From Paragordius varius (Eukaryota; Animalia; Nematomorpha), in assembly GCA_964247055.1 (NCBI GenBank), contig OZ176057.1:2790001-2854000 (forward strand): DNA of 64,000 bases, in the 5' to 3' direction. Of this stretch, positions 14,640 to 61,839 are shown one piece after another. How positions within the stretch are numbered: position 1 is the first letter of the stretch; each line of letters begins with the position of its first letter. The notes below the pieces were generated by a model, which was not told where the DNA came from, searched no databases, and saw only the letters and a program-made list of their open reading frames with translations. Position numbers and translations under genes: made by a program.

Positions 14640-16690
14640 TTGGAACCTACTCATTTAGATAAAAAAGAAACAGACGTATTGATGTCTAAAACACTTCACG
14701 AACAGTTTAAACACCTTTCTATAGATGACCAACCTACCTGCTCAAAATACTACATTGAAGGAAATAACAATAAGGAGAAAAACCCCATCAATAAAAATAA
14801 TTTACATGAATCAATAAAAACAAATCAAGTGACAAACACAGTTAATAATAACAACGAAAACCTGATCGTAAACATGTCAAACATGGTGCTTAATGACCAT
14901 ATGATCTCAATTTTAAATAAAGGCCTAAAATTTGCTATTTCTCCCTCAGTTGTGCCAGTAGAACAAATTATTTCAAACGTTGAAGCAGGTCTCTCTCGTA
15001 TAGATCCAAAAATAGCTGACATCATCAGAATGCAAGTCGTATCTATCCTTAAGAACAACAAAGATGAAAGAAGGCGATCAAACATATCACGTGAACAATA
15101 TATAGCATTAAAAGAGTTGAAAAATAATAATGATATTTTTATTTCAAACTCTGACAAAGGAAACCAAGTAGTTATAATGAACTTGTTAGACTATAATCAA
15201 AAAATACAACATATTTTAGAAGATACATCCAAATATAAAAAGATCACACGATGCCCTTTTAACACATTACATATAAATGTTAAAAAAATGATAAAATCAT
15301 CTCCCATTCCCTCACATTTACACAATTCGTTAATTCCTCAATGCCCTATTAATCCCAGTATGTATGGTGTCCCAAAAACGCATAAAAAGGATGTTCCACT
15401 GCTTCCAATTGTATCCACCAAAAATTCATCTTTATATGGTTTGGCACAGCATTTATCAGAATATTTGCAACCCTTCTTAAAAAACAAATTAAAAAATTCG
15501 TTTGAATTTATTGATAAAATAAGGGATATACAAGTAGCTGAAACCGATTTATTAATAAGTTTAGATGTGGAAAGCCTCTTTACCAGTGTACCCCTCAAGG
15601 AGTTAACCCATCTTCTTAAACATCTAAAGGTGGATGCGAAATATATTTCCTTTGTATAAATAATAATTTTTTTGAATTCAATGATAATTTTTACTTGCAG
15701 AAAGACGGGTTACCGATGGGTTTCCCAATTTCCCCCATTCTAGCTGATCTTTTTATGGAAACATTTGAAAATCAATTTATATTAAATTATTTTTTAAAAC
15801 CAAAATTTTATACCCGGTATGTGGACGATATGTTTATCATTTGGCCACATACAAGAACTGATCTCTCCTTATTTTTAGATTATATAAATTCGAATCCTTT
15901 TAACATACGGTTAACCGTCGAATTTGAGGCTAACCGATCACTACCATTTTTAGATGTTTTAATTACTCGAAATGACACAACATTGTCATACAGTTTTTAT
16001 CAAAAACCCACTCATTCCAATACCTATTTACATAAAAGTTCTTACCACAACTCGTTACAAAAAAAGAATGTTTTGAAAAATCAAATCTTTCGCCGGCTTA
16101 AACTGACAGATAATGCAAATAAAAATATTATAACAGAGCGCTTTGTGGAAACCTTTTTAAAAAATGGATATTCTGCAAACGATATCCATCGAGCAATTTT
16201 ATCACTAAATAATACCAAAGAAAACACAAAAAATTATAAGTTTTTTATTTCATTACCATATATACAGAACATCACCGATCGCATAGCTCACACTTTAAAG
16301 CAATTTGACATTGGTGTGGGGTTTAAACCAGGTCTTAAATTAAAAACTTTTTTATCAAATAATAATAAATCCAAATTAAATTATCCAGGGGTGTATAAAG
16401 TTCCATGCGAGTGTGGCAAGGTATATATCGGCCAAACCGCAAGGAAAGTTAAAACACGCCTGAATGAACACAAGTATAACATAAAGAATGGAGATTTTAA
16501 GAGTTGTATTGCGGAACATTGTTGGAAGGAAAATCATAATGTTTCTTTTGACAATGTCAGTTGCATTACAATTTTCAATAATAATCAAAGGCTTACGCGG
16601 GAATCATTAGAGATTCTCAAAGGAAACAACTTTAACCGAGAGGAGGGACAAAAGATGAGTGATATATGGAAAGTCATTCTTGATGATTGA
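14640..16690 (+). pseudogene. Penelope RT/GIY-YIG polyprotein, broken into 14640-15659 and 15695-16690
   Basis: Motifs as above, with a break between the two ORFs. N-terminal remnants with stops at ~14120-14640. Confidence 0.85.
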
Positions 16691-18198: not shown

Positions 18199-20187
<1,989 letters not shown>

Positions 20188-21246: not shown

Positions 21247-24200
21247 TAATAATAATAATTACATTATATGATATCACTCTTTCGAGCGGTCATATTCGTA
21301 AACTATTTCGCCATAGAACCCTGTCTAAGGCGTCTTCGCGTTTTAGGTTCAGTTTTACCATGTCCCTCTTAACTGTATCTATCCATCGCGTTTTAGGGCA
21401 CCCTTTTCCCCTCTTGCCTTTTACAATATAATCATCAATCATTTTACCAATGTAATTTTTATCTCTTCTTTCAACATGTCCAAACCATCTTAAACGATTT
21501 ACCATCATCTTTTGCGTTACCGATTTGATTTCCGTACTTCCTCTTATGTAGACATTCTTCACCTTGTCATTCCTCGTTACACCGCACATCAATCTAAGCA
21601 TTCTCATTTCAGTAACCTCAAAGTGTCTCTCTTCTGATTTCTTTATTGCCCATGTCTGTGAGTTGTACATCATTGTTGGTTGTACAACAGCACTGTAAAT
21701 CTTACCCTTTACTTTTAGGTCAATATTTTTGTCGCACAAAACACTTGAGATCTTTTTATAATTTGCCCAACTATTTCGAATTCTTAAATTAATATCAAGT
21801 GTTAAAGAACCATCAGCTGCTAATATCGCTCCTAAATATTTGCATTCTTCCTGACCTTTTAATACCCACCCTTCTTCTAATTCTATTTCTCGTTTTTTCC
21901 CGCCAAAATTTATCAGTTCCGTTTTCTTTTTGTTAACTTTTAATCCGCATCGTCGTAACACATCAATCCATTTACCCACCGATTCTTTTAATTCATGCAA
22001 CTCGTCTGACAGCACTATTAGGTCGTCTGCATAAAGAAAATACCAGCCATCGTGTTGTCCTACTTCTTTTGTAATTTCGTCCATGCATATTATAAATAAT
22101 AACGGGCTGATTGCAGACCCCTGATAGACCCCTTCGTTTATTTTAATAGGACCTGATATTCTCTGGTGTGTTTTAATTTTCGTTTGGTGTGATTCATACA
22201 TGCTTTTTAAAATCTTTATGTAACTTTCAGGGACCTTTTTTCGTCTTAAGCTCCACCATATTGTGCTCCGAGGTATTCTGTCAAATGCCTTTTCAATATC
22301 AATACAAATACCATGCAACTCCTTTTTCATTTCTAAATGCTTCTCGATTAGCCTTCTTACTGCGTGAATTGGATCAATGGTGGATTTTCCTGGAATAAAA
22401 CCAAATTGATTACCCTCTATACTAACCATTTTTCTTATTCTTTTCTCTAGTACTTTCTCAAATAACTTCATTGTATGCGACATCAATCTTATCCCTCTGT
22501 AATTATTACAATCATTAATATCTCCTTTACCCTTGAAAATGGGAACAGTGAAACTCTCCTTCCATTCGGTTGGTATCATACCTGTAGTAACTACATTATT
22601 AAAAATATCCGCTAAAAATTCAATACCTTTCTCTGACAATATTTTCCAACAGTTTATGTTAATATCGTCTGGACCTGCAGCCTTATTTATTGACATCTCT
22701 TCTAAACCAGCCTGGACTTCTTCTTTTGTTATACTTTCAATATGCGCAGATTTATAATCTGGTGTTTCGGGTAAACTTGTTTCACTGACGCCCAATTCAA
22801 GATCCTGGAAATATTCTTTCCACCTTTTCAATATTTTCGCTTCCTCAACGAGTAATTTGCCTTTTTTATCTTTAATAGCTGTCGCGTAAGGAGGCAAGTC
22901 CAGCTTTCTTCTGTGTCTTTGTCTAGCAATTTTAAAAACTTTGTTTAGACCTTGCTTACTGTTCAACTCTTCATATAATGATGCCGTCTTTTCTTTTTTG
23001 ACCAATCTTACAAGCCTTTTAAGTTCCTTATTAATCCTTTTATATTTTTCCTTGTCTTCTGCTTGGTGGGTGAACCTCCACGTTTTAAAAGCTTTTCTTT
23101 TCTCTCGCGATTTTAGAATTATTTTTTCGTCTTTCAGCCATGCCTCTCTATAAACCTGGTTTCTGCCACCTTTCATTCCGCATACCTTAACTCCCGCCTC
23201 TCTTATTTTTTTTGCCACCAGAGACCAAACACTTTCTGGGTCACTGTTCCTCTCTAGTATGCCTACCGTTTCTACAAATCTTTCTTTACTGTTTCTTAGA
23301 GAATCCCATTTAATTACCTTCGGCGCTATAAGCTTAGGCTTTTTGGCATTTATTGGTATATCTGTCATATATTTACACATAATTAAATTGTGTTGTGTGC
23401 TAATCTGCAAGTTAGGTATCACTTTGCAGTCCAAAACAAACTTTAAAGACTTTCGTGGCACTAGAATATAATCAATTTGTGACTTCTTATTTCCACTTTC
23501 GTAGGTAATTAAGTGGCTCTCCCTTTTCGTAAAAAAAGTATTTGTTATAGCAAAGTTATAAGATTGGGCAAATCTTAATAAACTAGCCCCTTCTTCATTT
23601 ATAACCCCGTAACCTTTTCCGCCGTGCCAAGGCTCAAAACCTCTCCTATTTTGTCCCACGTGCCCGTTGAAATCACCACAAAATATAATTTCTCTGTCTT
23701 TCGTTAATGAAGTCATTTCTGCGTCTAACAAATCATAAAATTTATCTTTCTCTGGTTTAGTTAAACCTATCTGGGGGGCATAAACGCTAAAGATAGTAAA
23801 AACCCTCTTATTTAACAATACGTCGACACTTATGATTCTACTGTCAGCACGTCTAACCTCAATTACTTGATTGGCAAATCTTGGGCACACTATTATGGCA
23901 ACCCCACAGTAACCATCCGTAGAACCTGAATAAAACATTTTATAATTACCCTCTAACGTCTTAGTACCATTTCCACGGTATCTGGTCTCCTGAATGCACA
24001 AAAAATTTACTTTTTTTACCCTCATAGTTTCAACTAGATCATATAACTTACTTTTTAACGAACCAACATTTATACTGGCAAAACACATTCTACAACCTTC
24101 CTTATCCCTATTGGCCCCTACCTCCGTGCAGCGACTGGCCGGGTCTGGCCTGCACGCCTTACAAAAAACACTCATAAAAAACAAAAATACAATAAAGAAG

Positions 24201-28480: not shown

Positions 28481-30546
28481 CAATGACATGTTGGCATGTG
28501 TATTTGGTTCACACATATATATATATATAATATTTTACATAATCTTCACTCGTAGGTTATCATGAAAGCCTGATCTTTTTGTTAAATAATGCAGTAATAA
28601 TTCATGTTAGATTATCCACAATCTATTTTAAATTGATATTGCCAAAAAATGTATATCTCTTCAAAACTTGGGGCTAAACAACATTTCTTGTTATTCCCTT
28701 ATTTGTAAGTACAAAAAGGCTTTCAGGATTGCCTACGCATGAACACGCAACATATAATTGCCCGTGTGAAAAGCATTCTGTAGATAAATCTAATCTGCAA
28801 AAAGTTAAAGTTTGGCCCTGAGCCTTATTTATTGTCATTGCGAAGGCCAGTTGAACAGGAAATTGCAATTTTTTAAATTGAAATGGGCATCTATTGGAAT
28901 CATAGGAATGCGAGGAATGATAACATTCTCACCTTTAAAAGGTCCCATTTATATAGTAGCTTCTATTATAATACAATATAATTTTTTTACAATGAGTCGT
29001 GTGCCATTGCAAAGTCTTGGCTGATTAATATTGCGTAACAATATTATTGGAACTCCTACCTTTAGGTGCAATATGGGGTGGTATTTTTGGTTTATCATAA
29101 GAATTTAGGAATTGAGTTAGATAATTAACTGCAATTCCTGATTCAATTACCGTATCTATGAATGTATAGGTAAATGCCTCTTGATTAATTTTAGATAAAA
29201 CATAATTGTTTATTTTAAATACATTTTGTTGGGGCCAAAATTACACGGTCGCACAACCAGTCATGATTTTAATGGTTGCTTTGAACATTAGAAAACACAT
29301 TGTTTATTAGCTCCTCTCTTGACGTCATATTTCTACAAAAGTTAGCGGGTAATGTTACTCCCGTATCCATGTTAATTGGTGTTCCATTTCCGATTGCCAA
29401 TAGGTGTTATGAAAAAATATCTGCCGAGGTATTGTTTTGCAAGTGTACACGCATAATTATATTTAAAGTTAAGGTTCTAACATGATTTTATAGAACAGAT
29501 TTTTTAAGGCACGAATTTATTTGGTCAGCTGGGGTAGATCGAGGAATGACAGGCAATGTCTGTCTAAAATCACCGGAAAGTAATATCAAAACATTCCCAA
29601 AAATCTCCCTCCTGCCGCGTAAATCTTGTATTAATTGATCAAGGGCCTCGAGTGATATTTTATGCATCATTGCACATTCATCCCATACAATAATCTTACA
29701 TTGTTGCAACACCTTCCCCATGTCAGATGTTTTTGACACATTGCACATAATATTTTCTTGACGCATATTTAGTGGCAATTTAAGAGCAGAATGAGCCGTC
29801 CTTCCTCCCGGTAATAAGTTAGCAGCTATCCCAGAAGAAGCTAGAGCCAAAGCTATATTTTTTTAATTCTGACAGTTGCCAATATAAGCTTCAAAAGAAA
29901 CGTTGTACCAGTCCCCCATGGTGCATCCAAAAAATATATCCCACCAACATCATTAGAAATATCTCGCATTATTTTATCGTATATTATCCTTTGTTCGTGT
30001 GTTAGTTTGGATAAATTACAATATAGATAGGAATGTCTTCAATTTATACCAAAGCGTCATTAAAAATTTTTGTTTCATCGTTTTTATTTGCACCAAGAGA
30101 TCCTCAGACATCTGTTTTTTATATTTTTCCCATAGCTCTGCCGGTGATGAAGGTGAACAAAACTTTAATATAATTGCAAACAAAGTACGCATTTGATTAG
30201 GCACGCCTCATGGATACATAGCTCTAAATGTTGATCATTTTCCAACAAATTGATCGCCTGGCATCCGCGAAACGTAGGATGTAAAACACCGTTTACGGTA
30301 TTTAAATAATCAAATGATGACGGTCCTCTCACATTTATCAATAATAGACGAAGAAAAAAACATTCGTCCTGGTTGTGATGAACCATATATAATCTACCTA
30401 ATGCCGCACCTTTATATATACCAGAATAGGCACTAACTGGGATCCCCGCTTGCGCCGTTCAAATTCTCTCTTACCATATGTTATAGGAAGGTATATCGGA
30501 ATAAAGCAATGTTTTCGCAAAGGCATCCTTTTGGCATAACTTAAAT

Positions 30547-33241
30547 CAGTGATACTCAAACCGCGCGCGGGAGTTCTTTAAATTTGCCCTATGATCATAT
30601 TGATACTTAATTATTTTTTTTATTGATAAATTTTTAAAATACACATAAACGAATTTTCGCTTAATTTAATATTAATTAATTTACTTTAAATTTAATTTTA
30701 ACGATTTTTATTTTTTACCAAATTTGAAATGTAGAAAAATTTCCCTACATTAAAATGATTTTGGCACAGGTTATTTCTGTTTCTGCATTCTATTTTTTTT
30801 TTGAAATTTTTATTGCAGTCCTTTTTGTATTTAAGCACTTCCACCCTAACTTGCATATACATATTTCATTCCTGCATCATTTTTCACAACTTATTATAAT
30901 TCAAATTATATTACCATTTTTTTGAAAAAAATTACATAATATTTAAGCACAAATTCAAAGGATGACATTCAATGCTAAAAAACGTAAATCATCCGATGAA
31001 AATCACTACTTTAAAAAAGAATGGAAAAATTCTTTGTCGTTTTAAATAAAAATGCGGTTACCTGCCTTATATGTAAGGACAAAATAATTATAAAAAAAAT
31101 ACAATATTGAAAGACATTTTACAATCCATCATCTCATAAATTACTAGAAAATCATGAGGAAAGAAACGAAAAATATAAAAAGATTAAGGAATCATATCAG
31201 AAAGAAAAATCTATTATGTCCATAGCTTATTCTCCCAGGAAAAAGCTGTAACATTAGCTTCGTATGAAATTTGCTATATCTCAAGAAATATGAAACCGTT
31301 TACTGATTCCCCACTAACAAAAGAATGTTTAATAAATGGTTGCACTTTTTATTTGACAAATCATGAGATAACTTAAAAAACTTCAACTTTCTTCAACATG
31401 TGCTCGAGGCATTGAAGATATGTCTAAATATATTTTCAACGATACATTATTGGCTTTGAAAAACTACAAATATTTTAGTATTGCTATTGATTCTAGCGCT
31501 GATATTAATTCAACCTCAATGTGTGATCTTCTTGAGATTTTGCAACGATAACTTAAATGAAGAATATTTTAAATTTTTATCAATGAATAATACCACAAAG
31601 CAAGGGATTTTCTTGAATAATTAGCACTTTTCTGGAAAATAGTGGTAGAAAAAATTGGTTTCGATCTGCAGAGAGGGCTGTCCCTCTATGATTGGAATAA
31701 ACAAAGGATTTATTCCTCATTTGAAAAATAAATATAATTTGCAAAATATTTTATCCTTTCACAGCTTTATTCATCAGCAAAACTTGATTTCGCGTGTAAA
31801 AGATGAATCACTGAATTCAGTAATTAAAACGGTCGTGGATATAGTTAACCACATCCTTGGCAGATAATTTAACTGCCGTAAATTCAAAAACCTTCTGAAA
31901 GATATCCACAGTGAGTTTGCAATATTCTTTTGTGCAGCGCTGTGAGATGGCTAAGCCTTACCAAAGTATTAATTAGATTTTTTGTTTTAAGACATGAAAT
32001 TCTATCATTTATGAATAACAGAAAGTTTGACGAGGAAATTAATAGTGACAAATGGTGGGTTTTATTGGCCTACCTTTGCGACATTACTTATAAACTTAGT
32101 TTTTTTAATACAATTTTTTAAGGAAGCAAAATAACCAAATTTGCTAAACAAATATTTGCTTTTGAAAAATAATAATAATATATTCATAAGTAAAACACTT
32201 AAAACGATTCATAAAGAAAATATGTTTACCGCGGAGATTATTTTAATAATAGACAATCATTTAGTATTTTTATCTAATGATGGAATTCACTTTTCAAAAA
32301 TTAGAAATATTAAAAATTGCTTAAAACTCGTTGAAAATCCATGGCATATGGATATATCCAATATACTTAGTTTTTTTGAAAAAAATGGCATTTTACGGGG
32401 TAAGCTGGTAAAAAGAGGACCTAAATAAAAAAAGCGAGCCGTCTATGTTCAACGCAATCGAAAATATGTAAGAAATCATATTTGAAATCGGATAGTTCAA
32501 TTTCGGAAAATTGTTATGGACTTCTGTTTTCAAAAAACCCGTTTTTTACAAGGGGTGACCAAACTGAGGGCCTAATTCAAAAAAAGGCGAAACTATTGTC
32601 GGGGCATTCATCAATGATTAAATTTTTTCGACATTTGAATTTGAATGTATCTACCGGTTTTCCAACATGTCACAAAGCCACCACTTTCCATTTTTATAAA
32701 TTAGATTAAGGAAATTGAGAATTTCGCTTTTGGGATATCATTGAAGCATTTGTAGATTTTAAAAATGATTCCAATTCAGAGGCTATATTCAAGGAGAATC
32801 GTTGGGAAGAAAGATATGTAGGGTTTTGGCAAGATGTGCCAAATAAATATGAAAATATAAAAAATCTAGTTATCCTAATGTTTTCCCTAAACTTACACGA
32901 CTGAGACGGCATATTCAAAAATGAAAATCGATTATCCGATGATAATATGGACGACGTATTAAGAGTGGCCTGTCATGAGGCGAAACCAAATTTGTCAAAA
33001 ATTATTGGTTAATATCAAAATAAATGTTGTTATCAAAATACTTTAATTTTTTAAACTTAATGGTGCAAAACGAGTTTTTAGCTGGATTTACATGCCATCC
33101 GCAAAAAAATCATTGTGGTGATTTAAAGCTATGTGCGTATGTGTCAAATAGCTATGGAATATTTGCCATTATAAGGTTCATGGCCCTCGAAAAAAAATAT
33201 ATTTTATTTGGCCCGTCAAATTTTTTTGGTGAGTACCACTG
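30547..33241 (+). mobile_element. hAT (Buster/SPIN/GTF2IRD2-like) transposon, decayed, copy 1
   Basis: TIR CAGTGATACTCA / TGAGTACCACTG. Perfect 8-bp TSD ACTTAAAT (30539-30546, 33242-33249). Transposase remnants YFSIAIDSS, GCPSMIG, FHSFIHQQNL, AVRWLS. Confidence 0.93.
32371..32705 (-). mobile_element. Helitron 5'-terminal fragment inserted in the hAT element
   Basis: Same family as 10362-10723. Absent at the homologous position of hAT copy 2 (~56640). Confidence 0.75.
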
Positions 33242-36200
33242 ACTTAAATAAAGCAGTTAAAGTAGTATCTAGTGGATTTCTAGCTACCTCTATGGCATTA
33301 GAAGGTGTAAAATCGACACGTTGCTCATTTTCTAAATGTATTGCTAAATGAACAACTGTAGGGCTACGTTCATATATAGGAAACAAAAATATTCGCCAAA
33401 CAGCTTCACTGCTGCTTATATATCTTCCTGACTGATACTGGGGTATTTCATCTTAAATATTTTCACTTCCAATATCGAATTGGAGAAAAACAGCCATATC
33501 GCTGCCTTTATTTATATACTTGCAAATGTTTTTGATTGATTTTGCAGAATTGCAATATTCTACGTTTATGTGACCTTTAAAGGTTTTTAACAATAAGGGG
33601 CTAAGGAATCACCCATCGATTATCTATTTCTACGTCACCATTCCTAAGATGCATTAAAGCTGTTTTGCCACCATCCTCTGGAACTCTTCTTCTGCTTAAA
33701 GGATGTCCATTGTTATCTGTAATCGTATGTGTTAATAAAGACCTGGGATATCGCTTGGAGCATCTTCCATCTTTTATACATGGGCACCTAGGGTTTAATT
33801 CGTTACAGGGTCCATCTATCATATATTTCATAATAGCCACATTTAAATCTTTATCAGTCGAGGATCAGGTATTTCAGCGGATATAACAGAATCTATCTCA
33901 CTTGACTTTATTTTGGAATAAAGCCAAATCAATATATGTGCATGTTGTAGTTTCCTTTACCACTCGACTGAGTACATACTAGATTGCACTGCACCAAACA
34001 CATCTAATTTAACTATATATTCAATTAAGGATCTAAGCTTTTGCTTAAACACTCAAGCTGTGATGTCTTGCCTATCTTTTGGGGCCTGTCCAGGGAGTAG
34101 GAGAACTTTTATAGATTCCCAAATAGGATTACATGTAAATGTAATAAAAATATCTGGGCACCCACATTGTGCCACATACGCGAAAGCATCCTGGGCATAT
34201 TCATGCATATGGCGAGGACTACCTATGTATGAAGATGGTAGTATTGTATATCTCCCAATATTGTTGATATTATATTCATTAATTATAGCATCTCGTAAGT
34301 GTATATATTTTTCAGAACGAAGTTTAGGCTGATTTAACCGAAGATATAACATACGTTCTGTTTCTATTTTTGCATACATATCTACAATGTATTGGTGAAA
34401 TAATTGTCTGCATCTTAAAATATGAATATCCTGACATTAATCGATACGAATAATATTTCATTGCGCTACATTTTTTATTAGTTTTTTGTTTAGTGATAGG
34501 ATTAATTATCTTATTTAAATTATATCCATCTGTGCCATCCAAGAATAATAGTGGATATTGTAGTGGATCGTAACATCTATGAGTTTCAGACACATTTTTC
34601 AGGTTATTGTTTCTCAGGTGAACAATATCTCTTGAATAAAATTGATCGCCGTCCATAACAATTGCTACCTCATCCATTGTAGGAGCATTAAATCTGCGTT
34701 CATGTTGGCCATGAGGCACTTTGTCGGCATGATTAACAATTTTATGCGTACCCACGGCATCATATCTATAGCCAATTTCACCAACTGATTTTGATGATGT
34801 AATAGTTCCTGTAACTGCAATAATATTGGCCTCTTGAGATTGATAAAATTATTGCAACGGATACCAAGTTCAACGGTATCATCACCAACAAAATATATTT
34901 GTAAAAATTTGTGATCACTCCCTTGTTGTGGAAGCAAAGAACATGCTTTATGATAGATTTGACCTTTCACTTTAAAAGTTAGCTCATTAGTTGGTACTAT
35001 ATCAGCTCCAAACGATGTCATTTGAAAGCAGGAATTGTATGCCCTAATATTTTGCAAAAAATGTTAAGAATCAGAAGTATTATCGGCTAGAAGATTTTTT
35101 AATGTCATGGGTAAACTCTGAAATGGTGGTGAATGCACCTTACCTGATGCACAACATAGCCCTTTGGAATCATTTTTAAATCTTAAAGCATTACAATAGG
35201 ACCATATTATACTCATGGAACCATTGTCATCTTTTCGTAATGAGTGATAGTCAATATCTGTTTCATAGCAAAAGGCTAAACGAATGTATTCCTGGTTACC
35301 ATCCTTTACCATAGGTGTGTAATTTTCATGATGGGTCCTAAGGATAAAAAGGTAGAAGCTTTTTTATATTGATAATACAAATGAAATAGCTATTAGCATG
35401 CATGGTCCATCAGCCGCATGCGATCCGCTTTTTGGCTCTTGATTTAAAATTAATATTATAAAATAATGGATTAGGAGTGCACGATACAACTCAGAGAACA
35501 TTTTTATACATAATAATCACACATATATAAGACATTTAAAAATGGTAATAAATGCAGTGATTCACGGTATTAAGTATCATATAGATCACAAATATAATAT
35601 ATATATTGCTACAAAACTTATTTGAATTACCGTTGACATTTGTGTTGATTGATAAGCACAATTTAATTAGTGAAAATTTAACAAATATCTACACCTTAAT
35701 AATTTTTTGGCATTAGATAGTTGAGTATCTATGTTTAATAATTATATTATATGATGTAAGAAACATATAAGGCAAAGTTATTTAATGGTTATTTTATTAA
35801 ATATCCATAATATGGTGATTAACGCATTTACAACTTCTAACACCAAACCCTATATAAGAATATATATTTGGGACGGGTAGGTTTGTGCAATGTTATTGTT
35901 GGAAGTTGATGCGCCCCTCACCTTGTACAAATGCATATAATCAACCCGTAACTTATACCATATCTCTGAAAAACATATATAACCTCTGATTCTCCATTAG
36001 TGGAAGATTTAGAGCTGCTATTAAATTAGTTTGGCATTTTTTTCGTTTCATCTTCTGAGTTGTACAACGTTTGGCTATTGATACAGAAGGCGCATAAAAT
36101 TTTCTGCACAAAATATTAAAAATTGTTTGTTTATAATAAAAAGATGAATATTTTAAAGCTTTCAAAGTACGTCGAAAAAGTAGATTTAAATTCTATTTAA

Positions 36201-38427: not shown

Positions 38428-41400
38428 TATACAACCAGCGAGCAGTAAGATTAAGGCCATTCGCGAATGTCCAGCCCCTAAAGATAAAACAAGTCTCCGA
38501 TCGTTTTTGGACCTTTTAAACTTTCATTCGCGATTTATACCTTTTCTGAAAACAATTGTCAACGAACTTCATCAGCTAGCTGGTTCCAAAAAGAAATGGT
38601 GTTGGACAGATATACATCAAAATATTTTTGAAAGGGCTAAGTTGTTAATAGGGAATAACAGCCGTCTCTTTCCTTTTAACCCAAGACTTTCCCTTATTTA
38701 GAAACAGATGCATCTGGGGAATGGTTCGGAGCCATCCTGTCGCACAAGACGTCATTTTTCCAAAAAATGTTCCCCAGCTGAAAAATTATTCGGTTATAGA
38801 AAAAGAGGCAAAAGTCATTGTATTGGCCCTAGAGAAATTATAAACATTTTTATATGGTAGAAAATTCGATATTAGAACAGACCATAAACCTATAATCAAA
38901 TTATTCGGGCATTAACGTGTATTAGGCGAGTCAAACAATGGTAAATTGCTAAGATGGATTTCAAAAACATCCGTTTTCGACTTCAACATAATGTACTACC
39001 CAGGAACCAAAAATCTAGCAGACTCACTATCAAGACTACCAACAGAGATAACCGAAGAGTGTGACAATGACGAGGATATACCGCGGAAAGTCCGGTTGCT
39101 ATGGTGTCAGGAGTTAAACTTAAACAAGGACAGGGTGCTTAAGGAAACTATGAGCGATGAGGTGTGTAAACAGATTAAAGCAGCAGGAAAGACCAATGAT
39201 TGGTCTAATCCCGGGGTACAGTCCTATAAACCACTGAGAAACAATATCGAGGAATCATACGGCTATATCAAGGTGACCGTCTTATTGTTCCTCAAAGCAT
39301 GAGGGTCGATATTCTTACTTATCTTCTTAAAGATCACCCTGGTATCCAGTCCATGAAATCGCAAAATGGGTGCAAGGATGTTTAAGTTGTCGAAAGTCAC
39401 GGTTCAACATTGCAATAAGCCCGGCTTATAAATGGAACCCGAACACCACCGTTTGGGAGCGATTGCATCTCGATATAGCGGGGCCCGTAGATAACCTCTA
39501 CTGGGTCATACTTATAGATCACTGTACCCGTTGGGTGGAAGTGGCACAGCTTAAAATAGTAAACCCGATCATTATTTTCAAAGTTTTAGAAAGTTGGTTT
39601 GCACGATACGGAACCCCAGAGATGATTGTAACTGATAATGCGTCGTATTTTAAGTCCGGTGATTTTGTAAGAATATTAAGTTCTTCTAATATCAAGCATG
39701 TAACTTCTGCGCCATACCACCCTCGTACAAATGGTTTAGTGGAAAGGGTCATTCAAACCTTGAATGCACTATGATATGTGTAATTCTGAAGTAACAGATC
39801 CAGAACGCCGGTAAAACCAGGTACTGTGGGCTCACAGGTCAGCACATCACAATAGTATAAATGAGACACCTGCACGATTATTTGTAAAATGAAATTTGCC
39901 GACACTGTCTTGGATGAAAGGAAAACCAAAGGTTTATATTGATGTACCTCAGATAGTATACGTGAGTTCGTTCCGGGTGAGAAAGTGTTATAAAGATTGA
40001 GTTAGAAGCCGGTTGGCGAGAGGGAAAAGTAGTATAATGGACTGAATTATTGTCATACAATATCGAAGATAGAGGTATGGTTTTACAAAAACATACTGAT
40101 CAATTAAGAGGGCAAAAAGAAGGTCCAGATGAACTTAAGCAAGCCGACCAGAAAGAATTGGAATCGGAACAACAGAATAATAATAATAACACTGTGTGCA
40201 AAAAAGAGGGTCATTTTGATTTAACGAAAAAAATTTTTTTTCATGAGATAGCTTGTGACCAGTGAATTCATTTGCCACCAAAATTATTATTTGTTGACAA
40301 TAGGTTTGAAATATTAAGAGAAATCGAAATCGGGCAAAAAGTGAAAATTAAGGATAATTAAGGATAATTCAAAAATAATGATAAAATTTGAAATATTATG
40401 GTTTATTATCATTTTAGGAGATATTTTCAATATATAAATACCCTAAAATCACTTAGTCAGGGTTTCTAAAAAATTTCAGCTCAAAAGATGGCGTTTTTCT
40501 TTTATCAAACTTAAAAGACAAAAAAGATTAAATGAATATATATTAAAATAATTTTTTTTAATCATTTACTACCTATATCAAAATCTTAACATTCATATTT
40601 TATTCAGTAAAAAATGCTTGTTTATTAAAATAAAACCAAAAATTGTCTTTTATTTTTACATTTTTTGTCATCTTGTGAGTGTATAAAAAATTAATACTGT
40701 TTTATTTTGGAATCTTACATGAGTGCGAATTATAAAATATATAATTTATGCAAAATAGGATTTAAAATTATTGGAATATTAACCAACAATCCGTACAAAT
40801 CCCAATACAAATATTAATTTGTCATAAAACAGACTTGTTACAGGGATTCGTAAGGATTGTTGGTTGATATTCCACTACTTTTGAATCCTATTTTGCATAA
40901 ATTATATCCTTAATAATACCCACTAATGTAAGAATCCAAAATAAAACAGTCTAAATTTTTTATACACTCATAAATTACCTGACAAAAAAATGCAAAAATA
41001 AAAAACAATTTTGGTTTTATTTTGATAAAGAAGTTTTTTTTACTGAATAAAATATGAATGTTAAGATTTTAATAGGGAGTTCAGGTAGTAACTAATTAAA
41101 AAAAATTAATTTAATATTGTGTTATTAAAATTTTTTGTCTTTTGAGTGTTATAAAAGAAAAAAGCCATCTTTTGAGCTGAAATTTTATAGAAACCCTAAC
41201 TATATAATTTTAGGCTATTTATATATTAAAAATATCTCCTATAATAATAATAAACGATAATATTTCAGATTTTATCATTATTTTTTGAATTATCCTTAAT
41301 TATCCTTAATTTTCCCTTTTTGCCCGAGATTTTCTCTTAATATTTCAAAAACTAGGTTGTCAACAAATAAGAATTTTTGCGGCAAACGAATACGGTGGTC

Positions 41401-51513: not shown

Positions 51514-52097
51514 TGGTATATATTTTAATTACCATGAAAATTTATTTGCTTACAATCATAGATAATTTAAGAAGGAAAATCTTTGGGGTCAGGGTTCATT
51601 CACAACAATACTTAAACATCATCCATAAAAATATTTATTATCAGCAAATAAACCTTTAAATAAAATTTGCTTGCTAGGAAAAAAATTTATTTTTTGTAAA
51701 CCAGGGCATATGTCATAAATTATTACAGTTTTTAATTAGCCGTGTCAAGACCATGATCATTATAACATATTAAATAAAATTTTTACGACAAATTAAAAAT
51801 ATAATTTGGTTATAGTAATAAACCCCATTAAATATATTTTATTCATATAGATGAATAACTTTAAAAAATGTATGGATGATTTAAATGGGCCATCCAAAAA
51901 AACTAAAAACCAAAAATCTAAAAGGAAAAAGTCAATTATATAATCATTAAATCTATTTCACAATTTTTTTTCAACGTAACGTCAAAATCTGTAAATACAA
52001 ACATTTTTTGCCAAGAGTTTGTGTATTAAATTATAAGCCCTTTTCACTACTTACTTCTTGAAAATATTGGAATATAATTTAATTGATTTTCTCATTT

Positions 52098-55000
52098 ATG
52101 CGTATCTTCACACTTTTTTGTTTTGTGATTATCGGGTTAACTATTATTGTGAAAACAGATGCAGGCTCGTCAGGTAATCTCCAAATATAAATATATACAT
52201 ATATAAATATATATATGAATTTAATAAATCATGTGTACTGTAATTCATATTTTAACGCTGAGTTTTGAGAACCGGTTCCCGCAAAAAGATATATAAAATA
52301 TTTTGATTAAAAAGAAATGGCATCGACCAAAATTAAAGTTGGAAAACCACAAAATACTACGGTAAAGATTGAAATTATACGGACAAAACGTAAAAATATA
52401 AAGACAATTATCTTTTTTAGTATAAAATAAATCACAATTAATTATGCTTACAATTGTAATTTAATGATATTTATAGGATAAATTAAGGTTTACAAAAGTA
52501 TGGTTGACTATTTAAAAAAATAAATGTTATCTTTATATTTTTCCGTTTTGTCCGTGATATTATTTCAATTTTTACGGTAAAAAATTGACAAAAAAATAAT
52601 TAATAATACATTTTAGTGTCATTTATCAAAAATCAAGGCTAATATACAGTATGAGTAAGTATACGTTGCCAGAAAGATATTGATTATTGCCAAATAGTAA
52701 ATGCAACAAAAGGCAGCATTATTGGCTAATAATAGTCAAAAAGTGAAAAAAAACTATAAGCCAATAATACTTCCCTTGTTTGTATTATTTGGCAATAATT
52801 AAAAACTTTCTAGCAATGTATACTTACCCATACTGTATCTTTTAGAATCTAAGGGTCAGAATGTCAAAATTTTAAACCTTAACCATAACCGTTAAGAGAA
52901 TAAATTAATGTAAATATATTTATGGTTTATAAATTTTATTTATTTATTTATATATATATATACGTTAAAATGCTCCAAATTTTAATTACAATATAGCCAA
53001 ATGCAAAACTACCAAAGGTAAGTTTATTTTATTATTTTTTCAGTTTATTTTATGTTAAATTTATTTTATTTTTATTTTATAAATGAAAGCTCCATGCAAA
53101 CCACCCAATTGCTATTTAATTTGTCCTAATGGATACGTACAAACTGCCAAAGGTCCAATATGCCGGTGTAATGGTAATTTGAACAAATTTTCTAAAAAGT
53201 GAATATATATATAGGAGAAAAAAATGACTTTTTAACTTCGAAAAAGTAACGATGCCTGGATAAATATCATTAAAAAATGAAAATGGATTGTTCAGATTTA
53301 TTTAGATATTTTTCAAATGATTCACTTTGGACACATGACTTATTTTAGATTATTTAATTCCAATTAAATATATATTAAGGCATTTTTTATAAAAAATTGT
53401 AAAATTATTTTAAAGCTCTCTTTTCAGTTAAATGCCTTCGTTTCCTTCATTGAAAAGTTAAAACTAATATATTTTTCAGACCAAAACGACTAATATTAAA
53501 AAAACTACTATTCACCAAATCGTATCAGCCATATCCTAATATCCATTTTGCGATTTTGGTTGAGAATCGAATTAAAATACTACACCTCTAAAATTTTATC
53601 TCTATTATAATCCATATATATATATATATATATAAATATAGCTTTTTCCATTATGTATTATCGACTATCCCAGACATGTTTCTTTTTTTGACAAAATTTA
53701 ATTTTTTTGATTAAAGATATCAATTATTAGCAAATATGTATTACAAAACTTTGATTCGAATTGGGGCATCTATAGGGTGACCAGATTATTTAAAGGAAAA
53801 AGCGGAACAAATCTGAGAAAGGGGGGGGGGGTACAACCAAAAATTTTTTATACAAATAATAATTTATTGTAATAATTTATTTTTAACACAAATACATTAT
53901 AATTATAATATATTTTATTCTTTGGTATATTTTTTATTTGAGTGAATGCATTTTAGCAGATTGCCATCATTTTTTAAAAATTTTGTATTCGTAAGAATTT
54001 GTCAAATTATATTTGACAGATAAAATGGCCTATAAAGTTTCAACGTTAAAACTTGATTTTCCAATGTCCACACCCTGATTTACAGTGGAAAAAACGCGCT
54101 TAATAGCAGCGTTGTTTTCAAGTAAAGATAGTGCAAATTCCACCCACAATTTTTAAAATATTATTGTATGGTACATAGTTAACTTCATGATGAAATATTT
54201 CTAACCATTTCTTTTCTACTGTATTTTTTTTCTGTTGTCCATAATTTAAGTTTTTCATTATTATTATATTTTTTAACTAATGATACTTTAAAAAAACATC
54301 ATTTTTCGAAGGATTACTTTTTGGGAATTTTCGGGAGATTCAGATGTAATCAAATGATTGAACATCGCACCAATTAAATTCTGGTTTTAATGTTATCCAA
54401 TGAAAATAATCAATTTCATTGAATTGCATCGTCCAGTCTTCCAAATAATTTTTATAGTTTGTGGAAAACATTTTTATATGATACAGAATATCTTGGCGAT
54501 TTATTAAGCCTTGTTTTTCTAAATTATTTATAATATTGCGGATGGTTAATGGTATAAAATTATTTGATAATCTTTCTAGATATTGGAATTTTCAGTTACT
54601 AAATTCATTGGCTACTTCGATTGCCGAAATTTTGTCACTTTCTATCAATTTAATAACATTTTAAAGAGAGAAGCATGATTATGTAGGAATACTAACCATA
54701 TTTTTAAATAATTACTTTTAAACTTTTCCAATGAGACATTTGTCCTGTCAAAATAATATTTTAAAGGATCATACAATTTAAAATTCTTTCGATAGCTGGC
54801 AGAAGAGCTAACCAACGAGTTTCACAATATCCAAGCATTTTTTGATATTGAACTTCTGCATTTTCACAGAATTCCTTAAGCGTTTCAACGCGTACCGTGT
54901 TTATATATAGAAATATATTTTAACAACTACATTTTCCACATCCAGGGGTAACAAATCAGCTGGACACCCAACGCCAATAATGTTTTAAGTTGTCTTTTAA

Positions 55001-58000
55001 ATTATTTTTTTCCAGAATATTCATTGTTGAAGTAATTATGTCGGAATTTCTACCGGGTAGAGAAATAATCTAAAATTTCAATTTTTACTCCGGTTCTGGA
55101 TCAAAATATCTTATTAAAGTGGGAAATAATTTTGTTTCCTTGTGATTTAATGCATCAGTGTATAGCGATATGAAATTAATTTTTAGCAAATCTATTTGTA
55201 TTTCAGAAAATGCATGTAGCGAAAGGACATTGCATACAATGGCTTGTGATTAACGGCGTGAAAAGATAAAACGCCTTCAGCTAGTGCCAAATTCTTTTCT
55301 TCCTCTCCAAATGCGGGTTTTCGATAAAAATCGCTCATTTTGTAAAATGATGCCGCTATATCTAAACATTTTTTTTGTTTCTGTGTTTCCATATGCTTTG
55401 TAATATCATGCCTTGTGCTAAAGTGAATTCCCCCTCGCATAAATAACATTTAACAAATGATTCATTCTTCGTTTTTGATAAAAGTAAATTCTTTCATTAA
55501 TTCATCGTTAAATTTACAACCTCTTTTATACTCATATTTTTAAATAAATATTAGTATAAAAAAATATTATATTACTTAATTTTCTGGACTAAACGTATAT
55601 GCTACCGATTTGTGGTATTAATTTGTCTTTGTGATAATGTTCAGTAGGAGTAGAAAGTGTAGAATCATATGATATAAATTCAAAAATAAAAAATATTTTT
55701 AATTTAAAAATAAAAAATTTTAATTTAAAATTGATATAGCTTTTAAAGATAACCAATGATAAAAAATTTAAACTTTTTTATAATCGTGAAAAAGCGGGAC
55801 ATTTGAAAAACGTAGCGGGACTTTAAGCGTCTAGCGATCCCAAACTTTATATCAGTTGATAATTTTAAAAATTACTAAATAGAAACGAATCAAATTTAAA
55901 TTTATGTTGCTATCCTAGTAAAAAATTCTATAAATAAGCCAAAATATTAGAAAATTTATTTACAAAAAAATCCATATCAAACTACCTCACGCCGCACAAC
56001 ATTATTGCGAAATATCGCGTTTATTACATTTCAATGCTAAATTAAGGCTAATTATTATATTATAATCATATCTAAAAACAAAAATGTCGCTTATAGTTTG
56101 CCTTATTTTAATATTTAGCTGGTGCACACATCTCATGGACTAAATCAGTGGTACTCACCAAAAAAAATTGACGGGCCAAATAAAATATATTTTTTTTCGA
56201 GGGCCATGAACCTAATAATGGCAAATATTCCATAGCTATTTGACACATATGCACTTATTCATACTCTAAATCAGCACAATAGTTTTTGCGGATACATTAT
56301 CCAGCTAAAATCTCGTTTTGCACCATTTAGTTTAAAAAATTAAAATATTTTAATAACAACAGTATTGAACATTAACCAACAATTTTTGACAAATTTGGTT
56401 TCGCCTCATGACTGGCCAATTTTACAGGTTAAGCGATTTCTATATGTATTCTTTACATACTTCATTTTTGAATTGCCCTCTCACACGTGTAAGTCGAGGG
56501 AAAAACAGTTGGGATAACTAGAGCACATTTTTTTATATTTTCATATTAATTTGGCACATCTTGCCAAAACTCTACATATCTTTCTTCCCTAAGATTCTCC
56601 TTGAATATAGCATGAAATGCGCCTGATCAAAACCGAAATGCTTAAGTTGCTTAATATTGGATATATCCATACATGGATTTTCTACGGGTTTAAGCAATTT
56701 TTAATATTTCTTGAAATCTGAATATTATTTCATTAGATAAAAATGTTAATTGATTGTCTATTATTAAATTAATCTCCGCGGTAAATTCCATATTTTCTTC
56801 ATGAATCGTTTTAAGTGTTGGATAGGGGTGTTTTATTTATAAAATCTTGTTTATATATATATATATTTATATATATTAGTTTCCTTCATAAGCAAATATA
56901 TGATTAGCAAATTGGGTTATTATTTTGCTCCCTTGAACTTGTATTAAAAATACTAAGTTTATAAGTAATGTCGCAAAGGTCTAATAAAACCGACTATTTG
57001 TTTCCACTAATTTCCTCGTAAAACTTTCTGTTATCTTTTAAAAAAATTTCATGTCTTTAAACGGAAAATCTTTTTAATACTTTGCTAAGGCTTAGCCATC
57101 TCACAGCGGTGTACAAAAGAATATCATCAAACTCACTGTGGATATCTTTCAAAAAGTTTTTGAAACAGCGGTTGAATTCTCTGCAACGGATGTGGTTAAC
57201 TATATACACAGCGTTTTAATAACTGAATGAAGTGATTCTTTTACACACGAAACCAAGTTTTGCTGATGAATAACGCAGTGAAAGGATAAAATATTTTGCA
57301 AATTATTTGTTTTTCAAAGAGAAATAAATAATTTGTTTATTCCTATCATTGAGGGACAACTATCTGTGCAGATCGAAACCAATTTTTTCATAGATATAAT
57401 ATAATTATCGAAAAAAGTGCTAATTATTTCGTGAAAACTTCCTTTCATGGTATTATTCATTGGTAAAAATTTTAAATATTCCTCGTTGATTATGTTTTCG
57501 TTGCAAAATCGCACGAATAGCGCACATTGAGGTGTTGAACTAATATCAGTGCTAGAATCAATAGCAATACCAAAATATTTGCAGTTTTTCAGAGTCAATG
57601 TATTATTAAAAGTATATTTAGACATATCTTTAATGCGTCGATTGAATCAGAAAGTAAGTTTTTTAATTTGCGCATGATTTGATCTTTATTATGGAATTAA
57701 TTAAATAACAAAGTGCAACCATTTATTAGACATTCTTTTTTAGTTGGGAATGGTTTTATATTTTTTCCTAAAAAATAGCAAATTTCATACGAAGCTAATG
57801 TTAAAGCTTTTTACTGGGAGAAAGCCATATACATAATAGATTTTTCTTTCTGGTATAATTCTTTAATCTTTTTGTATTTTTCGTTTTCCACATTCTGTTA
57901 AATTATGAGAAATTTGGATTGTAAAATGTCTTTCAATATCGTATTTTTTTATACTTATATTGCCTTACATATAAGGGAGGTAACAACATTATAATTTAAA

Positions 58001-61000
58001 ACAACAAAGAATTTTTCTTGCCATTCTTTTTATAAAGGAGCGATTTTCATCGGATAATTTAAGTTTTTTAGCATTAGATGTCATCATTTGAATTTATGTT
58101 TAAATATTAAGTAAATTTTACCAAAAAATAGGAATATAATTTGAATTATGCTATAAAAAACAGGCCGAAATTTAATTATGTTTATTTGAAAAATATTTTA
58201 TGGGAATGAGTTATAAAAATGATGCAGGGAATGAAAAGAATAATTATATATATATATATATATTATAATATATACAAGTTTATGTGAAAGGCTTGCTTAA
58301 ATACAAAAAAAGAATGCAATAAAAATAAAATAGAAAAGAAAATAGAATACAGAAACAGAAACAACGTGTGCCAAATTTTGAAATCATTTTAATGTAGGGA
58401 AATTTTTCTACATTTCGAATTGGGTAAAAAATAACAATCACTAAAATTAAATCCAAAGAAAATAAATTAATATTAAAATAAGCGAAAATTCGTTTAAGTA
58501 TATTTTAGAATCATCAATAAAAAATTTAAGTATCAATATGGTCAAAGGGCAATTTTAAAGCCCTCTTAGGGCCGCGGTTTGAGTACCACTGGTCTATATT
58601 TTTACCTTGAAGTTCCATAAAATAAATATAAAATAAATCATTTTTATATTTCGGTGCTGTTATAAAAGTGAAAACTTTTGTAATGGTTTTAATTCGTTTT
58701 CCATATTAGAAATAATTGATTATAAACAGACCTGGATTCTCCAATTCAAATTTGATTCGGAGGAGTGAAATGAAAGTGTTGTGTCCAAATGTTAAATAAT
58801 ATTTTAAAAATATATAAAAATATAAACAGAGATTTCAATTATTTTACAATAGCGCACCAATTAAACACTGAGGTATACCATGCAAGAATTCGTTTTTAAA
58901 AGGACTATTTTCTTGTAAAAAAATTAAATCTTACCCTTGGTATTGATAACTCATTTGAGTTGTTAAGACCCCTCCCTTTATTTAAGTAATGTACAATATA
59001 GTGAAAATTAACATAAAATACTTTAAATAAATCCTGATAACATAATATTAATAAAGCTATTTTAATACACTTCTGAATTTATTATAAATTAGTTGATAAT
59101 TTTCTCGCTTTATGTATAAATGTATATCGAATTGATAAAATGCAACAAAGAGTTGTGTGATATTTTTCGGAGATTGTATCCTATGATTTGGGTTGAATTT
59201 TTCCAATTTAATGTATATAACTACAGTATGCGTTTTGATGGTTTCTTATTTCCAGGTGCAATTCGCAACACAGTATAGTATGGAAAAGGCAACAAAATGT
59301 TCAAAAAACAATTTATTCCTTTCTTTTTTCCATACACTCCTGTGTTGCAAATTGCCCAACAGTAGTGTGAAATAAGCAACCATTAGAATGCATACTATAT
59401 GACCAAGTTATCAAAATGATTTTCCAAAAATTCCTTGTTTACATAATAGGCGAAAATGTGCCTTGCAAATTTTTGAGAATCAGAAATGAAACTTTACTTT
59501 TTACGAATCCAGAATAAGAAGATAATCAAAGATACATCACAAATTTTATTAAAATTTATTTAAACCTTTTGTTTAAACACTAAAAAAATAGTTTCTTCAT
59601 TTTGGTTTATGCCTAAAGAAATAGAAAAAAGAAGTTAATTTAAAGTGGGGCGAAGAAAAGCCGTTTTTCCCAATATACAAATTTTATCTGCTTGTAAATA
59701 ATCTCACATAATTACAGTAAAAATTGAAATTATACGAACAAATCTTAATATAAAGAAAGATATTTTTTTAAAAGACAACAAACCTGCTTTTTTAACCATA
59801 AATTTTTTATAAATAAATTATTTAATTACGATTGTTAAATATACATTTATTCATACTTTGCATTCTAAACAATGAGTTATAAGTAAAAAAAGTAACATAT
59901 AAAAAGTATGAATTGGATGTCGGAAAAATATATTATATTTTCGCGTTTTATCCTTAAAATTTCAATTTTACCTGTATGTAATAGGCTGTCCAAAGGCATA
60001 CTGTAACTGCAAATGTCCACCTTGTATTTGTCCGAAATGTCCTTGTAAAAAGAAACGCAGTAGCCCAGACGAAGATTTTTATACCCCAGAAAATTTTGTT
60101 AAATTGTGCGGACCAAGTGAATCATTTTTATTTTACCTTTTTTAACTAGACGCATAAAAATAAAATTATAAATTATTATTATTAATATTATTAAGTAGTT
60201 TATGCTTCACTCCTTTTGAATTTGGTTTGTTATTACCGTTTTTAAATGATCAAATCCATCCGCATTTCTATATAGTTCTATTTCAATTGACAAAAAAGTT
60301 TTGAACTCAAATTTTAATTCTTTGATACGACGGCTAATAAATTTAGTATTATCTGGTATAAAACCGGCCTTTACCCTTAATTTAATATTCGATTATAGTT
60401 ATAAAAGCCTCGGTCTTCATACCGTTAAAAATGCGGCTTAAATTAATCATGAAATATTTTATTCAGAATGTCCCAAGCTAAAATGTCCGCTAAAATGTCA
60501 AATATATGAACGGGATAAAAATGGATGCCCTATTTGCAAGTGCAAAGGTATAACAAATATTTTTTTTCCTAAAATTTAATTCTTTCTTATTAACAATTTT
60601 TTGGAGTTATATATAGTTAGTCGTTCCTTGACAACTACGCAAATATAATTTTAAAATTAATTTTTTGAATGTTAGTATGCCCGAAAATGAAATGTGATTT
60701 GGTGTGCCCAGATGGTTATGTTTATGTACAAGGATGTCGAACATGTGCTTGTAAAGGTTTAATTAACATTCATATTTTTATACTTTATTTTTAAGGGTTT
60801 GATTTAAAAATAAGTGTTTAGGCAAACATATAGTATTGAATTCAAATTTATCAAAATTATAATTGTAAACAAATTAAAAATCGATTTACAGTATAAGTTA
60901 ATTTACATGGCTAATTTATAACCAGATAGCAAATAAAACTTAATAGCTTTATTATTGACTAATAGCAGAAAAAAGCGAAATAACTAAAATATGTATTTAT

Positions 61001-61839
61001 AACAATTAAACAAATTCATTTTGGCATAATTGAACTCTATTTTTTTGTTAAAACGGTAAAAAACGCCCGCCACATCTTATTATTATAAACGATAGCCAAT
61101 AAAAGAGAACATCTTGTAAATTATCATTTTTTGAATGTGTTTAGGCTGTCCAGGAGTTAGATGTGAATGTCCACCATGCCCACCATGCATCTGCCCTACC
61201 TGTAGACCACCCAAACCACCGATTAAAACTTGTAAGACTACACCAAAAACAACCACTAGTGAACCGGTCACAGTAACTACAGAATCAGCTCATTATCATG
61301 AAACAACTGATTTAGAATCGAGTACTACAGTTGGCCATAAAAGTACTGACACAACTGTAGAAGTAACAAAAAAAATATGTCATCACCATGACAACGGAGA
61401 ACATTCCACCACTCATGATCACACTCGCTCAACTAGTACGGAAACAAGCAGTACAACACATTGCCCAAGACGTACCATACGATTAACGATGGGAACAAAA
61501 GCGCCCCCACCCCGCTTTCCAAACCCGGGTTGTCCCACAAGAAGGCGTCCGAAAAATTGTAAGCAACATGAGACAACTGTAAATACCAACCATATCAATA
61601 ATGAAGAACGTCATTCTACAACTGAAGGGACTGCACCTAGAAAAATACCTAAAGGATTGTCCATAAAACATGACGAAGAACATCATACAACTGCCATCCA
61701 TAATGTTATAATTAAATTGCCCATAAATAAGGGGACAGGAGATAAATGTTTGACACCTGTGGTGTTGCCAATTAAACCCCCGTGTGGCCCTAGAAAGGCT
61801 GGTTATTTGAGTAAAAACATTTATATGGGACACAACTAA
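52098..61839 (+). CDS. Secreted Cys-rich antistasin-like / mucin-like protein (389 aa). Exons: 52098-52173, 52997-53017, 53090-53173, 59985-60116, 60467-60547, 60676-60756, 61145-61839
   Basis: Exon 1 is a signal peptide, MRIFTLFCFVIIGLTIIVKTDA-GSS. All six introns are GT-AG and phase 1. The spliced length of 1170 nt is open to TAA. Three exons encode antistasin-like C-x4-C-x3-C...C-x-C modules. Linkage across the 6.8-kb intron and the true C-terminus are inferred. Confidence 0.78.
52358..52579. mobile_element. MITE family A, copy 2 (intron 1)
   Basis: ~50-bp TIRs ...GAAATTATACGGACAAAACG / CGTTTTGTCCG...TTTCAAT; TA-flanked. Confidence 0.65.
52645..52837. mobile_element. Near-palindromic Tc1-type MITE (intron 1)
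   Basis: TACAGTATGAGTAAGTATACGTTGCCAGAAAG... / ...CTTTCTAGCAATGTATACTTACCCATACTGTA; arms ~90 bp. Confidence 0.8.
53773..55821 (-). mobile_element. hAT (TAGGGTGACCAG-type) copy 2, right end truncated (intron 3)
   Basis: Begins TAGGGTGACCAG and is collinear with 205-350 and then ~1230-3405 of copy 1. Terminal TIR missing. Confidence 0.85.
56146..58591 (-). mobile_element. hAT (Buster-like) copy 2 (intron 3)
   Basis: TIR CAGTGGTACTCA / TGAGTACCACTG. Degenerate TSD GACTAAAT / GTCTATAT. ORF 57314-57625 contains YFGIAIDSSTDIS. Confidence 0.88.
59222..59399. mobile_element. Near-palindromic Tc1-type MITE (intron 3)
   Basis: TACAGTATGCG...GCAACACAG / CTGTGTTGC...GCATACTATA arms. Confidence 0.7.
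59713..59976. mobile_element. MITE family A, copy 3 (intron 3)
   Basis: TACAGTAAAAATTGAAATTATAC... / ...TTTCAATTTTACCTGTA. Ends 6 nt before the AG acceptor of exon 4. Confidence 0.6.

Follow-up and report, generated by a model that had tools for sequence, protein, structure and literature searches.

The window analysed here is a 64-kb stretch of contig C8 (C8:2790001-2854000) in the 110.5-Mb assembly (44 contigs) of a very AT-rich animal genome, and its GC content ranges from 24 to 38% in 2-kb blocks. Between positions 52098 and 61839 of the window, seven exons on the plus strand form a locus that is very likely a real protein-coding gene. The predicted product is about 390 residues long and combines three antistasin-like modules (A1–A3) with two short modules rich in Cys and Pro (C1 and C2, not to be confused with contig names) and a tail rich in Thr, Ser and His. 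The antistasin family itself is known, and the architecture A-C-A-A-C-tail is an unusual variant of it. The full explanation that we favour, at somewhat better than even chances, is that this is a real seven-exon gene for a secreted, matrix-tethered protein of antistasin type with a protease-binding or protective role.

Exons and splice sites

The initial annotation proposed that six short exons, among them a 21-nt microexon, join in frame to a longer exon at 61145-61839. All seven were recovered by piecewise translation, and the six introns are all GT-AG and all in phase 1. The features of the locus, in positions of the window, are as follows.

52032-52037, plus strand: TATA-like hexamer TATAAG, 61–66 nt 5′ of the ATG; a possible core promoter, in a region of 25% GC where such hexamers are frequent
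52098-52173, plus strand: exon 1 (76 nt), start codon and a 25-residue leader resembling a signal peptide; ends in phase 1 with donor GTAATC
52997-53017, plus strand: exon 2, a 21-nt phase-1/1 microexon (A-KCKTTK) with one Cys; acceptor ATATAG, donor GTAAGT; its support consists of its splice sites and frame
53090-53173, plus strand: exon 3 (84 nt), antistasin module A1
59985-60116, plus strand: exon 4 (132 nt), Cys/Pro module C1, a basic KKKR patch and an acidic/aromatic linker with one further Cys; donor GTGAAT
60467-60547, plus strand: exon 5 (81 nt), antistasin module A2
60676-60756, plus strand: exon 6 (81 nt), antistasin module A3; donor GTTTAA
61145-61839, plus strand: exon 7 (695 nt), module C2, a Pro/Lys linker, a mucin-like stretch rich in Thr, Ser and His, and a basic Pro-rich C-terminal region with four further Cys; stop codon TAA
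61921-61926, plus strand: AATAAA, a candidate poly(A) signal 82 nt past the stop; weak evidence in AT-rich DNA

Introns 1–6 are 823, 72, 6811, 350, 128 and 388 nt long, and the five internal exons (21, 84, 132, 81 and 81 nt) are all symmetric. All twelve splice sites are intact and all seven exons are open. The exons stand out in composition, with a GC content of 37–42% versus 10–26% in the introns. Exon 7 is an open frame of 231 codons, which has a probability of about 9e-8 per start at the composition and stop frequency of the window. Over the remaining 52 kb of the window, Cys-rich stretches are rare (14 of 21,682 segments of 26 residues have five or more Cys), and the open frames there contain no match to the antistasin Cys pattern.

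The boundaries of exon 4 leave one choice of donor. It must be GTGAAT at 60117, because the GTAAAA donor at 60045 yields a stop codon once it is joined to exon 5. The same GTAAAA begins an in-frame 24-nt GT...AG segment inside exon 4 (60045-60068). This segment was considered as a micro-intron, the removal of which would keep the frame, and was retained as coding on account of its exon-like GC content of about 46% (counted by hand).

The introns cut the antistasin modules at constant points. The acceptor lies 2 nt before the first Cys in A2 and A3, and the donor lies one codon and 1 nt past the sixth Cys in all three A exons. Paralogous antistasin modules on contigs C6 and C8 have intron positions identical to those of the A exons. 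Several donors of the locus are weak, and a polyubiquitin gene in the same window (18208-20172) served as a control for donors such as GTTTAA and GTATAA. It encodes one monomer per exon, with the Gly76 codon split by a phase-1 intron each time, and its donors are GTACAC, GTTTAA (twice) and GTAAAT. Weak donors are therefore acceptable in the present gene, since a securely identified gene of the window uses comparable ones. The annotation track of open reading frames (ORFs) overlooked this gene, with its 21-nt microexon, its 81-nt exons and its weak donors.

The leader encoded by exon 1 has an Arg at position 2, a hydrophobic core of 16 residues and the sequence T-D-A before the likely cleavage site (hydrophobic window score 3.19). 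Judged by this leader, the product is probably secreted. No hydrophobic stretch was seen at its C-terminus. The mature protein would contain 41 Cys, an odd number, and at least one of them would therefore be unpaired and free for intermolecular bonds.

Antistasin modules, Cys/Pro modules and the exon 7 tail

The order of the modules in the predicted protein is the one first proposed, namely A, C, A, A, C and a tail rich in Thr and His. The assignment of the A modules to the antistasin family was likewise upheld by the Pfam model PF02822, which all three match over its full 26 positions and above the curated gathering cut-off of 21.2 bits (A1 22.5, A2 32.9 and A3 27.5 bits). A2 was also recovered in a whole-genome scan for the family (C8:2850469-2850543). 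A2 and A3 contain all six family Cys in the spacing C-x4-C-x3-C-x9/10-C-x2-C-x-C. A1 carries a Pro in place of the fourth, a loss that the one Cys encoded by exon 2 might make good. Single A modules compared with chains in the Protein Data Bank gave chance matches only. A profile of 16 aligned modules, made of A1–A3 and 13 further modules of the same genome, matched the solved chains of antistasin (1SKZ, 8.4e-9), guamerin (3BG4, 3.9e-7), hirustasin (1BX7, 5.2e-4) and bdellastasin (1C9P, 6.5e-4), and gigastasin was matched as well. By these profile comparisons, A1–A3 are members of the antistasin-like domain family.

In the ten-Cys leech domain, the counterpart of the six-Cys unit is Cys 5–10, which are joined by the disulfides 5-8, 6-9 and 7-10 (PMC6265900). 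The position that immediately follows the unit's second Cys aligns with Arg34 of antistasin, Arg30 of hirustasin and Met36 of guamerin. We take these three to be the P1 residues of the leech inhibitors. At the aligned position A1 has Tyr, A2 has Pro and A3 has Asp.

The two Cys/Pro modules stand at the start of exons 4 and 7. C1 has eight Cys in 21 residues around a CPPCICP core and C2 has seven Cys. The two are 54% identical in amino acid sequence, share the pattern CP-x3-C-x-C...CPPCICP-x-C, and are 62% identical at the nucleotide level, about 2.4 standard deviations above codon shuffles. Exons 4 and 7 both begin with GCTGTCCA directly after TAG, a shared start that the initial annotation had pointed out and that was verified here. 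Searched as DNA, the pattern C-P-P-C-x-C has five matches in 110 Mb, compared with four for the reversed control, and two of the five sit in this locus, 1.16 kb apart, each directly after TAG and GCTGTCCA. The stricter pattern C-P-P-C-x-C-P has three matches in the genome, the third of which (C6:9095489) lies in a frame that is not Cys-rich. From these comparisons, C1 and C2 are paralogues of each other, and within its genome this gene alone has them. Exons 4 and 7 are thus related, and they very probably belong to one gene.

The C modules matched no Pfam family. The idea that a C module is a collapsed antistasin unit, which has lost its loops, was tried and rejected: MAFFT lines up CP-x3-C and C-x2-C-x-C of the two kinds of module, but hhalign gives a probability of 8% with a single aligned column, and there is no Pfam match.

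The antistasin module is common in the genome, where at least 47 exons encode it. Among its paralogues, A3 is closest to the module at C8:929485-929562 (68% identity), which likewise has Asp after the second Cys. This module lies in an antistasin-like locus of two modules on the minus strand (C8:929377-929718 and 934471-934671). The region C8:920-940 kb contains these two A modules, with no C module and no Thr/His tail within 20 kb. A second locus, on the minus strand at C6:8492272-8495349, has four antistasin modules within 3 kb, each in an open frame of its own. Their P1 residues are Pro, Arg, Arg and Asp, and the locus resembles a gene of several modules, each on its own exon. Like the present gene, the other antistasin-like genes of this genome have one module per symmetric phase-1 exon, the same intron positions and a variable P1 residue. 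They differ in that CPPCxC is not present elsewhere beyond chance.

The common start of exons 4 and 7 had been read as the mark of a block duplication. A recent duplication of an A-C block was rejected. C1 and C2 are related, but the A exons are mutually about 50% identical in nucleotide sequence, and the intron in front of exon 4 does not resemble the one in front of exon 7 (local score 11 versus a shuffle mean of 12.1). On these figures any duplication is old and cannot be demonstrated as block-wise.

Past C2, the overall composition of exon 7 includes 17% Thr, 12% Pro and 8% His. Residues 31–112 of the exon are the most biased part, with 30% Thr, 12% Ser, 12% His and 4% Pro, and contain HHH and HxH clusters. 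The exon has no N-x-S/T sequon and no internal repeats, and is single copy in the genome. No relative of it was found in a word-indexed search of 5.8 billion clusters, in a full HMMER search of 1.84 billion representative proteins (0 matches at E<=1e-3) or in the ESM Atlas. The description of the protein as lineage-specific fits this result, as well as the restriction of the C module to this gene within its genome. An AlphaFold2 model, which was made for exon 7 only and without an alignment, has a mean pLDDT (predicted local distance difference test) of 43.5, a value that fits disorder and proves none. By composition, the stretch rich in Thr, Ser and His is probably O-glycosylated and disordered.

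Downstream, a neighbouring sequence at C8:2859694-2863618 has two near-duplicate six-Cys exons (C-x4-C-x3-C-x8-C-x2-C-x-C-P) that loosely resemble both the A and the C modules. Neither exon reached a Pfam family, even with the threshold relaxed to E<=10.

One transcript and its transposon-rich surroundings

It is likely that all seven exons belong to one transcript. The strongest argument, which concerns exons 4–7, is that the C modules are paralogous and specific to this gene. For exons 1–3, the donor of exon 3 lies exactly where the internal modules of the paralogues have theirs; clearly terminal paralogous modules run directly into a stop codon or a short tail, unlike A1 with its internal-type donor.

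Several observations weigh against a single chain, which is predicted from DNA sequence. Since all internal exons are symmetric, every isoform with a skipped exon would also be in frame, and the fit of the frame is no proof of this particular chain. Read-through of the exon 3 donor (53174) adds ten codons before a stop at 53200-53202, and the resulting peptide, about 70 residues long with six Cys, is complete in itself. Read-through of exon 4 ends after nine further residues, with an AATAAA 14 nt past the stop.

These points could be accommodated by two genes or by alternative transcripts, an arrangement that we consider rather unlikely. Exons 1–3 would then encode a secreted micro-protein of about 70 residues with a single antistasin module, and exons 4–7 would be a second gene whose first exon was not found. 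The even number of Cys in the read-through product of exons 1–3 agrees with this arrangement, as do the 6.8 kb of mostly transposon DNA between exons 3 and 4 and the tandem clustering of antistasin genes in the genome (e.g. C6:8.49 Mb and C7:4.20-4.24 Mb). The position of the exon 3 donor speaks for one chain. Furthermore, the open frame of exon 4 has no in-frame ATG, and intron 3 has no ATG exon that combines a signal-like core with a phase-1 donor (best hydrophobic score 2.31 versus 3.19 for exon 1). There is also no AATAAA within 600 nt past the read-through stop of exon 3, only ATTAAA, which is common in AT-rich DNA.

The gene appears to be located in transposon-rich DNA. The following repeats were found in its introns.

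52358-52579, no strand assigned: a second fold-back repeat in intron 1, besides the element on the next line
52640-52852, no strand assigned: palindromic miniature inverted-repeat transposable element of about 200 bp in intron 1, with 2816 first-look candidates genome-wide; among the copies listed, identity is about 84–88% in one orientation and 75–80% in the other
53848-55821, no strand assigned: multi-copy repeat of about 2 kb in intron 3, with more than 30 copies at 84–87% identity
56140-58575, minus strand: relic of a decayed hAT-like (DUF4371) transposon in intron 3, with copies at 78–85% identity; the DUF4371 match (E=3.6e-6, 27.5 bits) is below the 32.1-bit cut-off

Of the 6.8 kb of intron 3, about 4.4 kb is multi-copy transposon DNA, which has inflated the intron, a point that we count in favour of a single gene. 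Outside the gene, the window has long ORFs that are transposon-like by eye at 6168-9979 (minus strand), 14640-16690 (plus), 21290-24184 (minus), 29488-35057 (minus) and 38946-39774 (plus). The labels given to them by eye include gag-pol/integrase of the long terminal repeat (LTR) type, a Penelope-like reverse transcriptase with a possible GIY-YIG end, an endonuclease with a reverse transcriptase (similar to RTE and other long interspersed elements), helicase fragments and an integrase fragment.

Such surroundings raise the question of whether the locus is a decaying or never-expressed relic, which in our estimate is highly improbable. LTR, Penelope-like, RTE and Helitron-type sequences appear to dominate the window, repeats have invaded introns 1 and 3, A1 is short of one family Cys, and purifying selection is not demonstrable without a homologue. 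A relic is hard to reconcile with seven open exons and twelve intact splice sites, with the completeness of both six-Cys modules, with a 231-codon frame that stays open in DNA of 32% GC, and with the retained contrast in GC content between exons and introns.

Possible role and relation to known systems

In the explanation that we favour, the product would consist, from the N-terminus, of a signal peptide, a Lys/Thr linker with one Cys, A1, C1 with its charged KKKR linker, A2, A3, C2, a Pro/Lys hinge, a Thr/Ser/His stalk and a basic Pro-rich end. The antistasin knots would be rigid, protease-resistant binding heads, each presenting the loop past the second Cys to the active site of a protease. 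The Tyr of A1 would suit chymotrypsin-like targets, the Asp of A3 an acid-specific enzyme at best, and A2, with its Pro, would probably be non-inhibitory. Anchorage in mucus, cuticle, a secretion or a similar extracellular layer would fall to the Cys/Pro modules and to the His-rich tail with its predicted glycans, and cross-links by disulfides or metal may contribute. As a speculation, a convertase might recognise the KKKR patch past C1 and divide the protein there.

A number of findings count against this explanation. A1 is barely above the PF02822 cut-off and has five of the six family Cys. The four-Cys N-terminal subdomain is missing: A2 and A3 are two residues apart, and A1 is preceded by a seven-residue linker with one Cys. 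Pro and Asp at P1 are foreign to those leech inhibitors that have been characterised (Arg or Met in the aligned chains), and they weaken the case for inhibition by A2 and A3. The low confidence of the exon 7 model is a weak indication of disorder, since it comes from a single-sequence run. Judged by its residues, the product is not a canonical leech-type inhibitor: no ten-Cys domain was found, and the P1 residues are atypical in A2 and A3, with the Tyr of A1 compatible with chymotrypsin-like enzymes. Classical trypsin-type inhibition appears unlikely, because the P1 residues are Tyr, Pro and Asp. The original assignment to the antistasin family is borne out by the match of the family profile to solved chains. 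The case for inhibition itself is weakened for two of the three modules.

The same gene could instead encode a structural protein, a possibility to which we give clearly less weight. It would be a disulfide- and metal-cross-linked part of cuticle, egg-string, cyst material or adhesive, in which the knots act as cross-linkers and the His-rich tail binds metal. The P1 residues of A2 and A3 (Pro and Asp), the odd number of Cys, the His clusters and the Thr-rich stalk would all suit such a material. Antistasin-like repeat proteins are found in mussel byssus and foot, where they have been discussed for metal binding (PMC5435178), and in the adhesive mucus of limpets (PMC7333891), and reviews call the functions of the non-leech members of the family largely unknown (PMC7851590). 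On the other side, the limpet authors preferred a protective inhibitor role for their protein (PMC7333891), the tandem-repeat organisation typical of silk, mucin and adhesive proteins is missing here, A1 retains a Tyr compatible with inhibition, and the gene is single copy with a role predicted from its sequence. The initial annotation had left the choice between a secreted effector and a structural protein. The signal-peptide-like exon 1 agrees with secretion, and a function as effector, cuticle component or adhesive is conjectural.

A further version of the structural idea, improbable in our view, makes the CPPCxCP modules a new lineage-restricted Cys/Pro mini-knot with redox or metal-binding properties, which together with non-inhibitory knots and the tail would build a cross-linked extracellular material (cuticle, cyst wall or egg-string adhesive). 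An inhibitor fold would then have been recruited as a structural brick.

If the gene model that we favour is true, exon shuffling has carried the antistasin knot, as a phase-1 cassette, into novel extracellular architectures in a lineage other than annelids and cnidarians, in a genome that has expanded the module and varied its specificity residue. Should the animal be a parasitic hairworm, a secreted protease-binding protein would be a reasonable candidate for interaction with the host or with a matrix. Among invertebrates, secreted Cys-rich mosaic proteins restricted to one lineage are common, and the gene answers no long-standing question. It is a concrete example of what annotation based on ORFs or homology overlooks in this genome.

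Three known systems resemble parts of the product. Its tail is similar to mucin-type O-glycosylated stalks in that residues 31–112 of exon 7 are 42% Thr and Ser, lack N-x-S/T sequons and have a low-confidence, probably extended fold. It differs from them in being short (about 80 residues), in having 12% His and only 4% Pro, and in having no tandem repeats.

The non-leech antistasin-like proteins with multiple repeats, such as Hydra antistasin, the multi-domain forms of annelids, the mussel foot antistasin-like protein with eight repeats and the limpet protein that combines WAP and antistasin domains, share with the product consecutive six-Cys repeats of 25–30 residues and secretion. They are found in mucus, byssus or gland secretions. 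In the literature compared, none is described with Cys/Pro modules of the CPPC type or with an orphan tail rich in Thr and His.

The leech inhibitors (antistasin 1SKZ, hirustasin 1BX7/1HIA, guamerin 3BG4 and bdellastasin 1C9P; PF02822) have the same six-Cys unit with a conserved Gly and are also secreted. They are 48–119 residues long, each six-Cys unit follows a four-Cys subdomain to give ten Cys per inhibitory domain, and their P1 residue is Arg or Met. The units of the present product, by contrast, stand alone or abut each other and have Tyr, Pro or Asp at P1. One of them, A1, has five Cys. The whole is a modular protein of about 390 residues in which the antistasin units are combined with unrelated modules.

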